DNA of 64,000 nt from Malacoraja senta (Eukaryota): NCBI GenBank assembly GCA_038087875.1, contig CM075977.1:124558001-124622000 (forward strand), in the 5' to 3' direction. A program made the position numbers and the translations under genes. The notes under the pieces are model-generated. The model saw only the letters and a program-made list of their open reading frames with translations, made no database searches and had not been told where the DNA came from. Below are positions 57,381 through 58,544 of the stretch, in pieces. The stretch's first letter is position 1. Each line of letters starts with the position of its first letter.

Positions 57381-57546
57381 CCAACGAGGAAGATAGATTT
57401 GTGATTTCTTCAGGAACTCAAACCATCCTCCCCCCTTCCCTCCGACACAGACACGGAGCGATCGCCAGCCCCCCCCCCCCCCCCCCATTTTTTGTTTGTT
57501 AAATATCTATTTCTTTGGGCGTTTAAAAAAAAAAATTCCGCCTTAC

Positions 57547-57638
57547 CATTTCTGTACTTTTTCGATAGCTGCCATGATCCGTTTGATGTCATTCTTCACT
57601 CTGCTCCTGGTCTCGGCCCGCACCGATCTTCCGGACAT
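57547..57638 (-). pseudogene. BCL7A: Captured BCL7A first coding exon, copy 1, with splice donor
   Basis: [30 protein letters not shown] plus TG|GTAAGG (92 coding nt). Matches the BCL7 N-terminal domain; KR(V/I)MAA favours BCL7A over BCL7B/C, which have KKVMA. Confidence 0.88.
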
Positions 57639-57878
57639 GCTGTGTGTGTATTTGTTTGGCGGACTCTGAGGGGAGAAGCGCCGGCACCAAGAGCGAGCGA
57701 ACGCGCGGACAGACGGACGAAAGCAAAGATCATAGAGCGGAATAGGTGACATTTCGGGTCGAGACCTTTCTTTGGACTGAGTCAGGGGAAAGAGGAACAA
57801 GAGATATAGACGGTACTAAGGACAAATAAATGGAAGATATGCCTATATCTCCCGTTTCCCTTTCTCTTGACTGTCAGT

Positions 57879-57906
57879 CTGAAGAAGGGTCTCGATCCGA
57901 AATGTC
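57879..57906 (+). ncRNA. Penelope-type minimal hammerhead ribozyme-like motif
   Basis: CTGAAGA-A-GGGTC-TC-GATCC-GAAA-T-GTC: CUGANGA and GAAA cores, stem II, GUC triplet. Helix I is weak. Confidence 0.55.
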
Positions 57907-58017
57907 ACCTATTCCGCTCTACGATCGTTGCTTTCGTCCGTCTGTCCGCGCGTTCGCTCGCTCTTGGTGCCGGCGCTTCTCCCCTCAGACTCCATCACAC
58001 ACACACACACACACAGC

Positions 58018-58100
58018 ATGTCCAGCAGATCGGTGCGGGCCGAGACCAGGAGCAGGGCGAAGGATGACATCAAACGGGTCATGGCAGCTATCGAAAAAGT
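58018..58100 (+). pseudogene. BCL7A: Captured BCL7A first coding exon, copy 2 (inverted, 3'-truncated)
   Basis: [28 protein letters not shown], then a switch into Penelope tail sequence. Confidence 0.88.
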
Positions 58101-58544
58101 CGACCCGAAATATCACCTATTCCTTTTCTCCAGAGATGCTGCCTGATCTGCTGATTTAAACCAGCATCTGCAGTTCCTCCCTATACAAGGTATGTGCTGT
58201 TTTCGTCTGTATTAGTGTGAGTCCAGTCAGATTTGGCTTCCAGTCAGATTAACAATCACGCAAGTTTCCATACACACACTTACTTCAGCAAATAGCGACC
58301 AAGGCAGTGCTGACAGTGATGGGGGAAATTGATGAGGGTTTACTGCATTTAAAAAGAAAATTAAAAAAACATTTAAAACATTTAAAAACACACAAACTGT
58401 TCCCCCGCAACGCTCATTACACTGCGAGAGGCATAACTGAGATCGGGTCAGGTTTACTGAAATGGTGGAAGTTATGCTCCGGTGCGTACTACACGTCAGT
58501 CCATTGGATTTCGCAGGAGTGGACCATCTTGCTCCACTCTATGA

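Follow-up and report, generated by a model that had tools for sequence, protein, structure and literature searches.

In Penelope-like elements (PLEs), the element protein nicks and extends both target strands, and internal initiation of reverse transcription yields an optional tail (PMC11167929), whose 30–40 bp reflect two internal start sites of the reverse transcriptase (RT) (PMC11167929, PMC8557442). These elements occur as inverted 5'-truncated copies, with palindromic junctions that have been attributed to self-priming, and they retain introns (PMC3846280, PMC8557442). They also co-mobilise intron-containing host sequences or genes, framed by their pseudo-long terminal repeats (pLTRs) and with an inverted copy alongside (PMC3846280, PMC8557442). 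In the minimal hammerhead ribozymes (min-HHRs) of PLEs, a base is bulged out 5' of helix II, and helix III is tiny and palindromic; they act as dimers and show weak activity (PMC4209133). PLEs are present in cartilaginous fishes (PMC8455134). The stretch analysed here (the window) comprises 64 kb of contig CM075977.1 of Malacoraja senta and contains a palindrome in which two inverted copies of a BCL7A-like 5' untranslated region (5'UTR) and first coding exon are fused to a repeat tail with Penelope-like traits. With moderate confidence, we read it as what is left, after decay, of a single complex insertion, made by a PLE or by a non-autonomous derivative using a PLE tail.

The closest described cases are the host genes framed by Penelope terminal repeats in Adineta vaga (PMC3846280). 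There, as here, the host sequence retains its intron and is enclosed by direct repeats of parts of a PLE (here PLE-like) terminal repeat; an inverted copy lies next to it, and the junction of the inversion is palindromic. The same study also describes a captured internal segment that recurs upstream in the opposite orientation (Arkhipova, Yushenova & Rodriguez 2013, PMC3846280). In contrast to those cases, the locus in M. senta holds a 5' gene fragment of ~185–310 nt and not a whole gene, the fragment is embedded in one ~95-nt tail, of which 24 nt overlap, and not enclosed by two full pLTRs, and the host is a cartilaginous fish, with no target-site duplication (TSD) and no autonomous partner identified. 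The canonical PLE insertion combines a partial tandem, an inverted 5'-truncated copy and an optional tail of 30–40 bp (PMC8557442, PMC11167929). Shared with it are the head-to-head copies with their 3' tails directed outward, an extension found in a minority of copies, and a min-HHR-like motif in the terminal repeat, whereas here there is no open reading frame (ORF), the left arm lacks a tail end, and Rfam gives no hammerhead match.

The palindrome, the presence of which in the DNA is confirmed, spans positions 57556–58100 (545 nt). The inverted-repeat search resolves it into two collinear arm pairs, 57641–57780/57874–58013 (140 nt) and 57556–57658/57998–58100 (103 nt), both 91% complementary, and an inner pair of 30 nt. 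Aligned to itself by BLAST, the palindrome gives 86% over 553 columns (E = 1.75e-169), and in the MAFFT alignment the arms are identical at 230 of 255 positions (90.2%), the differences being 20 transitions and 5 transversions, besides 4 gap columns. The arms diverge to a comparable extent in the tail (9.5%), the 5'UTR (8%) and the coding sequence (7.2%), and by 23% in the inner stem. Outward from the loop, each arm consists of a pyrimidine-rich inner stem (30 nt), the 5' part of the tail (~41 nt), a CpG-rich 5'UTR (~100 nt) and a BCL7-type start. The centre of the palindrome (57780–57874, without strand) is formed by the inner stem, 57780–57809/57843–57872 (77–80% complementary), and a ~33-nt loop (57810–57842).

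The plus-strand RNA is predicted to fold into a single long hairpin of -467.4 kcal/mol (shuffled sequences, -184 ± 6 kcal/mol; z = -45), equivalent to ~250 bp of imperfect double-stranded RNA (dsRNA). This agrees with the sequence-only reading of the locus, which had proposed two inverted copies of the BCL7A 5'UTR and first coding exon arranged as a long hairpin; both arms indeed encode a BCL7 N-terminus. It had further led the inner arms through Penelope tail sequence to a loop of ~30 nt. Between the tail copies and the loop lies the 30-nt inner stem. A comparison of stem and loop with the longer tail copies gave no significant similarity (p = 0.12–0.30), and their assignment to a longer tail element was rejected.

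In the left arm, the coding part of the BCL7A-like exon 1 (57547–57638, minus strand) begins with an ATG at 57638 and holds 30 codons plus TG up to the native exon end. The 5'UTR ahead of it (57639–57738, minus strand; alignment columns 95–196) is ~100 nt long and CpG-rich, with a CA-rich stretch before the ATG. The 31-residue peptide matches residues 1–31 of human BCL7A (27 of 31 identical, E = 3.7e-12; BCL7A chains of BAF-complex structures in the PDB), slightly better than BCL7B, and R20 likewise favours BCL7A. In the protein collection, the exon-1 ORFs of many vertebrates read ..VRKW or ..VRRW and then stop, at the same boundary as in the left arm. The left arm passes this native end, AAATG|GTAAGG, with its GT splice donor, into ~120 nt of intron-like sequence (57426–57546, minus strand) that starts with GTAAGG and holds T11 and G18 runs. 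Adjoining it, outside the palindrome, is a 5'-truncated C-terminal fragment of the ORF of a long interspersed nuclear element (LINE) (57040–57425, minus strand; the boundary, at 57385–57425, is approximate). The ORF at 57169–57384 (minus strand) matches PF09004 (E = 2.9e-6, above the cut-off), which is also found beside RVT_1 in the LINE ORFs of the window.

The right arm carries a 5'UTR of 102 nt (57916–58017, plus strand) and a coding part for a 28-residue peptide (58018–58099, plus strand), which breaks off at 58099/58100, 9 nt before the exon end, and is followed by re-entry into the tail. The arms are unequal: the exon end, the splice donor and the intron-like sequence are found only on the left and have no counterpart on the right. 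Since intron-like sequence after AAATG|GTAAGG is present in the left arm alone, that arm cannot derive from the right one, and therefore the left arm, or a common ancestor resembling it, is primary. From the retained splice donor and intron-like sequence it also follows that the capture was made from unspliced RNA or from DNA. A processed pseudogene, i.e. a LINE-made retrocopy, was rejected on the same ground, and because the copy comprises no more of the gene than its 5' end and has neither poly(A) nor TSD. The homology search with the 85-residue ORF running over tail, 5'UTR and exon returned only ordinary vertebrate BCL7 exon-1 ORFs (36–48% of the query covered) and no siblings of the chimera; an exact look-up of 8 local ORFs in the protein collection gave no match.

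The capture junction, ..GAAATGTCACCTATTCC|GCTCTA.., is identical in both arms, also when the upstream context is included (..GAAATGTC ACCTATTCC|GCTCTA..), whereas ~8 other tail copies in the window have TTYTCTCCAGAGATGCTGCC in place of GCTCTA... The start of the host sequence ~9 nt after the GUC, in place of the usual tail, had been noted from the letters alone and is borne out by this comparison. Because ..CACCTATTCC|GCTCTA.. is identical in both arms, the junction was made once. The 5' part of the left inner tail copy (57739–57779, minus strand) includes a 24-nt segment, termed X (57739–57762), and its hammerhead-like core is destroyed (CUGA to CCAA). The corresponding part of the right inner copy (57875–57915, plus strand) ends in ..CACCTATTCC, includes X at 57892–57915 and keeps CTGAAGA-N13-GAAATGTC intact (57879–57906).

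A second direct copy of X (TCGACCCGAAATATCACCTATTCC; 58100–58123, plus strand) marks the point of tail re-entry, and is 92% identical to 57892–57915 as a direct repeat and 96% identical to the left X as an inverted one. The 184-nt BCL7 piece of the right arm is in this way flanked by X on both sides, as the sequence returns to the tail at a position 24 nt before the one at which it had left. Without the BCL7 insert and one of the X copies, the right-arm sequence runs colinearly with ~10 other tail copies in the window. The junction between exon and X shows only 1 nt of microhomology. All three copies of X carry GAAAT, as opposed to GAAAC or AAAAC in the other tail copies, which is indicative of a single source subfamily. 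The 3' part of the tail (TTTTCTCCAGAGATGCTGCC..) follows at 58124–58177 (plus strand), with an internal deletion of ~29 nt with respect to the copy at 23.7 kb and with the optional distal extension AAACCAGCATCTGCAGTTCC; the tail may in fact extend a few bases beyond this position at its 3' end.

The tail is present in ~11 copies in the window, most of which start at CAGTCTGAAG and are ~95 nt long; the part kept in each arm corresponds to the first ~41 nt (CAGTCTGAAGAAGGGTCTCGAYCCGAAATGTCACCTATTCC). The consensus, CUGAAGA-A-GGGUCUCGACCC-GAAA-CG-UC, agrees with the published description of min-HHRs (PMC4209133), and the pattern CTGANGA-N13-GAAAYRTC occurs 6 times in the window (0.14 expected), in all cases within the tail family. 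Within the palindrome and its flanking tail, the CUGANGA..GAAA..GUC core is kept only by the right inner copy, the left one having CCAA for CUGA and the outer one lacking the 5' half. Two traits of PLEs are found in the family. One is the optional tail extension of 30–40 bp, seen here as the ~35-nt AAACCAGCATCTGCAGTTCC in 2 of the ~11 copies (at 23759 and 58158). The other is the occurrence of inverted 5'-truncated copies arranged head to head, at 34.3 kb, at 0.8 kb and in the BCL7 palindrome. The pairs at 34252–34335 (minus)/34327–34414 (plus) and at ~800–930 contain no host sequence and meet at the CAGTCTGAAG start or close to it; fold-back is habitual in the tail family. Two of the tail copies, at 26690–27100 and 53710–54120, share ~330 bp of additional upstream sequence (82% over 421 nt) and hold no ORF with a Pfam match; the element to which the tail belongs is probably seen there in a longer form.

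Several observations weigh against a PLE origin. In respect to the ribozyme, no hammerhead family of Rfam was matched at E ≤ 10 in 56500–58700, nor at E ≤ 0.5 across the whole window, and the only local matches were microRNA (miRNA) models at chance level, triggered by the hairpin. The hammerhead-like motif of the sequence-only reading thus holds as a sequence pattern but not as an Rfam match. The tail exit point also lies away from the predicted ribozyme cleavage site: the host sequence begins 9 nt past the would-be site and the exit falls inside the helix II loop, so that ribozyme cleavage explains neither junction. In Pfam scans of 26 ORFs of the window, RVT_1 was found only together with an apurinic/apyrimidinic endonuclease (APE), with RNase H/integrase or with PF09004, and GIY-YIG never; the RT ORFs found are of APE-type LINE or Gypsy elements, and none near any tail combines RT with GIY-YIG. 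The absence of a PLE ORF within 64 kb is not decisive, since short 5'-truncated or non-autonomous copies would not carry one. No TSD was detected, as direct repeats of at least 8 nt between 56900–57570 and 58120–58300 were limited to tail-internal words, but this test is weak due to the uncertain left boundary. The left end of the captured piece, which abuts the LINE fragment, is ill-defined. Of the proposal that a Penelope derivative transduced a host fragment, what stands is the fusion at a fixed point to a Penelope-like tail, with the extension and the head-to-head copies of that family; a PLE ORF in the window and a TSD were not found.

Template switching by reverse transcriptase makes chimeric retrocopies, such as the U6-L1 chimeras. 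In these, as in our reading of the present locus, the 5' part of a bystander RNA, up to its 5' end, is joined to the 3' portion of a retroelement at a point where the two share hardly any homology or none; the present case would differ in having two switches (out of the element and back in), an unspliced host RNA and a later inverted duplication. In the insertion that we propose, cDNA would be made on unspliced BCL7A RNA, through the start of the intron, exon 1 and the 5'UTR to about the RNA 5' end. Synthesis would then jump to the element RNA just after ..CACCTATTCC, giving rise to the capture junction and to the left arm, and the strand would fold back at the centre and copy itself into the right arm. 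This copy would halt 9 nt before the exon end. A second cDNA, derived from the same tail subfamily and primed on the opposite side of the target, would be joined to it through the single nucleotide of microhomology. The 24-nt direct duplication would be due to this second cDNA having already copied 24 nt past the exit point. Afterwards, the arms would have drifted ~8–10% apart, with loss of invariant BCL7 residues in both coding copies and with one of the three tail pieces keeping its hammerhead-like core. What the DNA shows directly is how the locus is built, that its arms share one junction and are asymmetric, that the copies have decayed, and that the tail family has Penelope-like traits; that RNA and not DNA was copied, the order of the steps and the enzyme, we infer.

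Both coding copies are decaying, as indicated by amino-acid changes at 5 of 5 positions (A14V, D16N, V21I and R29Q in the left arm, G3S in the right) to residues unseen in 95 database BCL7 N-termini, and by the absence of exon 2; the exon-2 motif was found nowhere in the 64-kb window, including the 57 kb downstream on the left-arm strand. The ratio of nonsynonymous to synonymous differences between the arms is 5:1 in the coding part. The properties of a functional BCL7A first exon are not seen: invariant residues are changed, no exon 2 follows, and the right arm has no exon end. The CpG observed/expected ratio in the palindrome is 0.95–1.14 (window median 0.36). Between the arms, 17 CpGs are shared and 6 lost, and the divergence is 13% at CpG positions and 9.1% elsewhere, which makes CpGs hardly more mutable than the rest, although the numbers are small. 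Such well-kept CpGs could be accounted for by a lack of methylation, by a young age or by conversion between the arms. Among the mismatches in the plus-strand RNA, 11 are G:U and 9 are A:C; with no bias between the two kinds, there is no indication that RNA pairing was selected for on either strand.

The same anatomy could have arisen without any retroelement enzymology, if a 5' piece of BCL7A had been joined to a pre-existing tail by end-joining or by microhomology-mediated template switching during replication and then inverted by fold-back, with the tails as bystanders. Such a DNA-level rearrangement would account for the retained splice donor and intron-like sequence, for the single nucleotide of microhomology at the right junction and for the lack of a TSD; with ~11 tails per 64 kb, chance adjacency is plausible, and the region is a patchwork of fragments of transposable elements. 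We nevertheless consider it unlikely, as the BCL7 piece is nested in a single tail copy with a 24-nt overlap and all three copies of X belong to one subfamily. In addition, head-to-head tails without BCL7 recur in the window, which makes the inversion a property of the family, and the ~100 nt of host sequence ahead of the ATG are typical of a 5'UTR in length, as expected if the piece began at an RNA 5' end. Pack elements typically capture GC-rich 5' gene ends, and the palindromic architecture around such an end resembles a Pack-type or fold-back DNA transposon with BCL7A exon 1 captured inside long terminal inverted repeats (TIRs). The likeness to Pack-MULE and Pack-type transposons is confined to the GC-rich 5' gene fragment and the inverted repeats: in 56500–59000 there are no inverted repeats beyond the arms, no TSD was found at the arm ends or at wider candidate ends (a single copy was tested), the arms are unequal, with the intron continuing on the left only, and one end alone, that of the right arm, terminates in a directional retroelement tail with the optional extension. 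This origin is accordingly quite improbable.

The left arm might also belong to a working BCL7 paralogue as its true first exon, accompanied by a partial duplicate in inverted orientation; it has an intact ATG, an open frame of 31 codons, the native exon end, a good GT donor and a CpG-island-like composition. Its four substitutions at positions invariant in 95 BCL7 proteins, the missing exon 2, the presence of a repeat tail and an inverted copy where the promoter is expected, and the PJA2 exons downstream on the same strand make this extremely unlikely. A functional role of the palindrome, as a locus for hairpin RNA (a source of endogenous small interfering RNA, endo-siRNA) acting on BCL7A or as an ADAR substrate, would be compatible with any origin. 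The hairpin predicted for either strand is very stable, each arm offers ~185 nt with ~92% identity to a BCL7A-type start region, and the well-kept CpGs could mean an unmethylated and possibly transcribed state. As the mismatches reveal no pairing selection, the arms diverge at a neutral-looking rate and the miRNA-model matches are at chance level only, we give such a function little credence. The reading as an assembly or long-read fold-back artefact is barely credible. Palindromes are a known class of artefact and PLE structures are hard to assemble (PMC8557442), but the arms of a fold-back read or assembly chimera would be near-identical and symmetric, and those observed here diverge by 10% (25 of 255 positions, plus indels) and have different outer continuations, which excludes such a chimera.

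Returning to the relic of a PLE insertion, the locus most likely has no present-day activity, although read-through from either strand would, according to the predicted fold, yield ~250 bp of imperfect dsRNA. A more far-reaching variant is that the palindrome belongs to a dispersed, non-autonomous, Penelope-derived fold-back family of this genome, in which the captured CpG-island 5' end, that of a broadly expressed gene, would keep the family unmethylated and transcribed, either as a lasting source of hairpin RNA against the BCL7A start or as a set of mobile CpG-island promoters equipped with splice donors. That the CpGs are unusually well kept is compatible with this variant without establishing it, and we regard it as highly doubtful.

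Relative to PJA2, the palindrome is in 5' position, ~20.5 kb from the first large coding exon, and its left arm has the orientation of that gene. The position on the 5' side of the PJA2 coding exons had been suggested before, and is supported by six exons mapped on the minus strand (36876–35815, 28802–28593, 25413–25294, 19787–19665, 12851–12735 and 11319–11179), covering residues 4–575 of the shark protein P0096 with 64–92% identity per exon. The 362-codon open frame at 35815–36900 (minus strand) is 72% identical to shark Praja-2 over 98% of the length. An in-frame BCL7-PJA2 fusion was rejected, as the left-arm donor is in phase 2 and the PJA2 acceptor (tcatag|CTGCC, ~36876) in phase 1, with a stop within 10 codons. 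The CpG-island-like stretch at 43.6–44.2 kb was likewise rejected as the PJA2 promoter; it is a CpG-rich minisatellite (43650–44150) with a ~42-bp unit (GGATCGGTCGGGCTGTCAGGCCGCCGGTGAGTGCTGTGAT-like), a GC content of 0.59–0.66 and a CpG observed/expected ratio of ~1. Closer to the palindrome, a single-copy GC-rich block (56400–56940; GC 0.64–0.68, CpG observed/expected ~0.7) contains an imperfect 52-nt inverted repeat (56565–56616/56658–56709), without a Pfam match or a second copy in the window; it could serve PJA2 as promoter or first exon, or represent cargo of the neighbouring tail copy (56939–57037). Three N runs (21216–22510) were considered as masked PJA2 exons and rejected, since they lie inside a CT/GT-rich simple repeat (SLSVSLSL..) and the PJA2 exons map elsewhere.

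The remainder of the window includes a long LINE ORF (13513–16167, minus strand) in a PJA2 intron, with an APE-type endonuclease (PF14529) and RVT_1 in 325 + 559 nearly uninterrupted codons, which may be a fairly young copy. At 47033–49792 (plus strand) is the pol region of a Gypsy-type long terminal repeat retrotransposon, with aspartyl protease, RVT_1, RNase H, integrase zinc finger and integrase core. Probably by chance, 7678–7737 (minus strand) resembles the MAT2A 3'UTR stem-loop C of Rfam, scoring 29 bits and thus remaining below the gathering score of 47 (E = 0.07).

In general, the capture of unspliced host sequence in association with a PLE, with an inverted copy alongside, is of an already known kind, to which the present case, most likely a relic, would add one example. 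If the reading is correct, it would be a vertebrate case of a PLE copying an unspliced host gene together with inverted structures, so far documented mainly in rotifers. For annotation, it is a warning that BCL7A-like first exons with a good ATG and splice donor in this genome can be element cargo, and the locus itself is a candidate source of dsRNA near PJA2, as judged from the predicted hairpin. The asymmetric arms and the 24-nt overlap would offer an unusually readable record of template jumps and fold-back in a transposition cycle that is still poorly understood.

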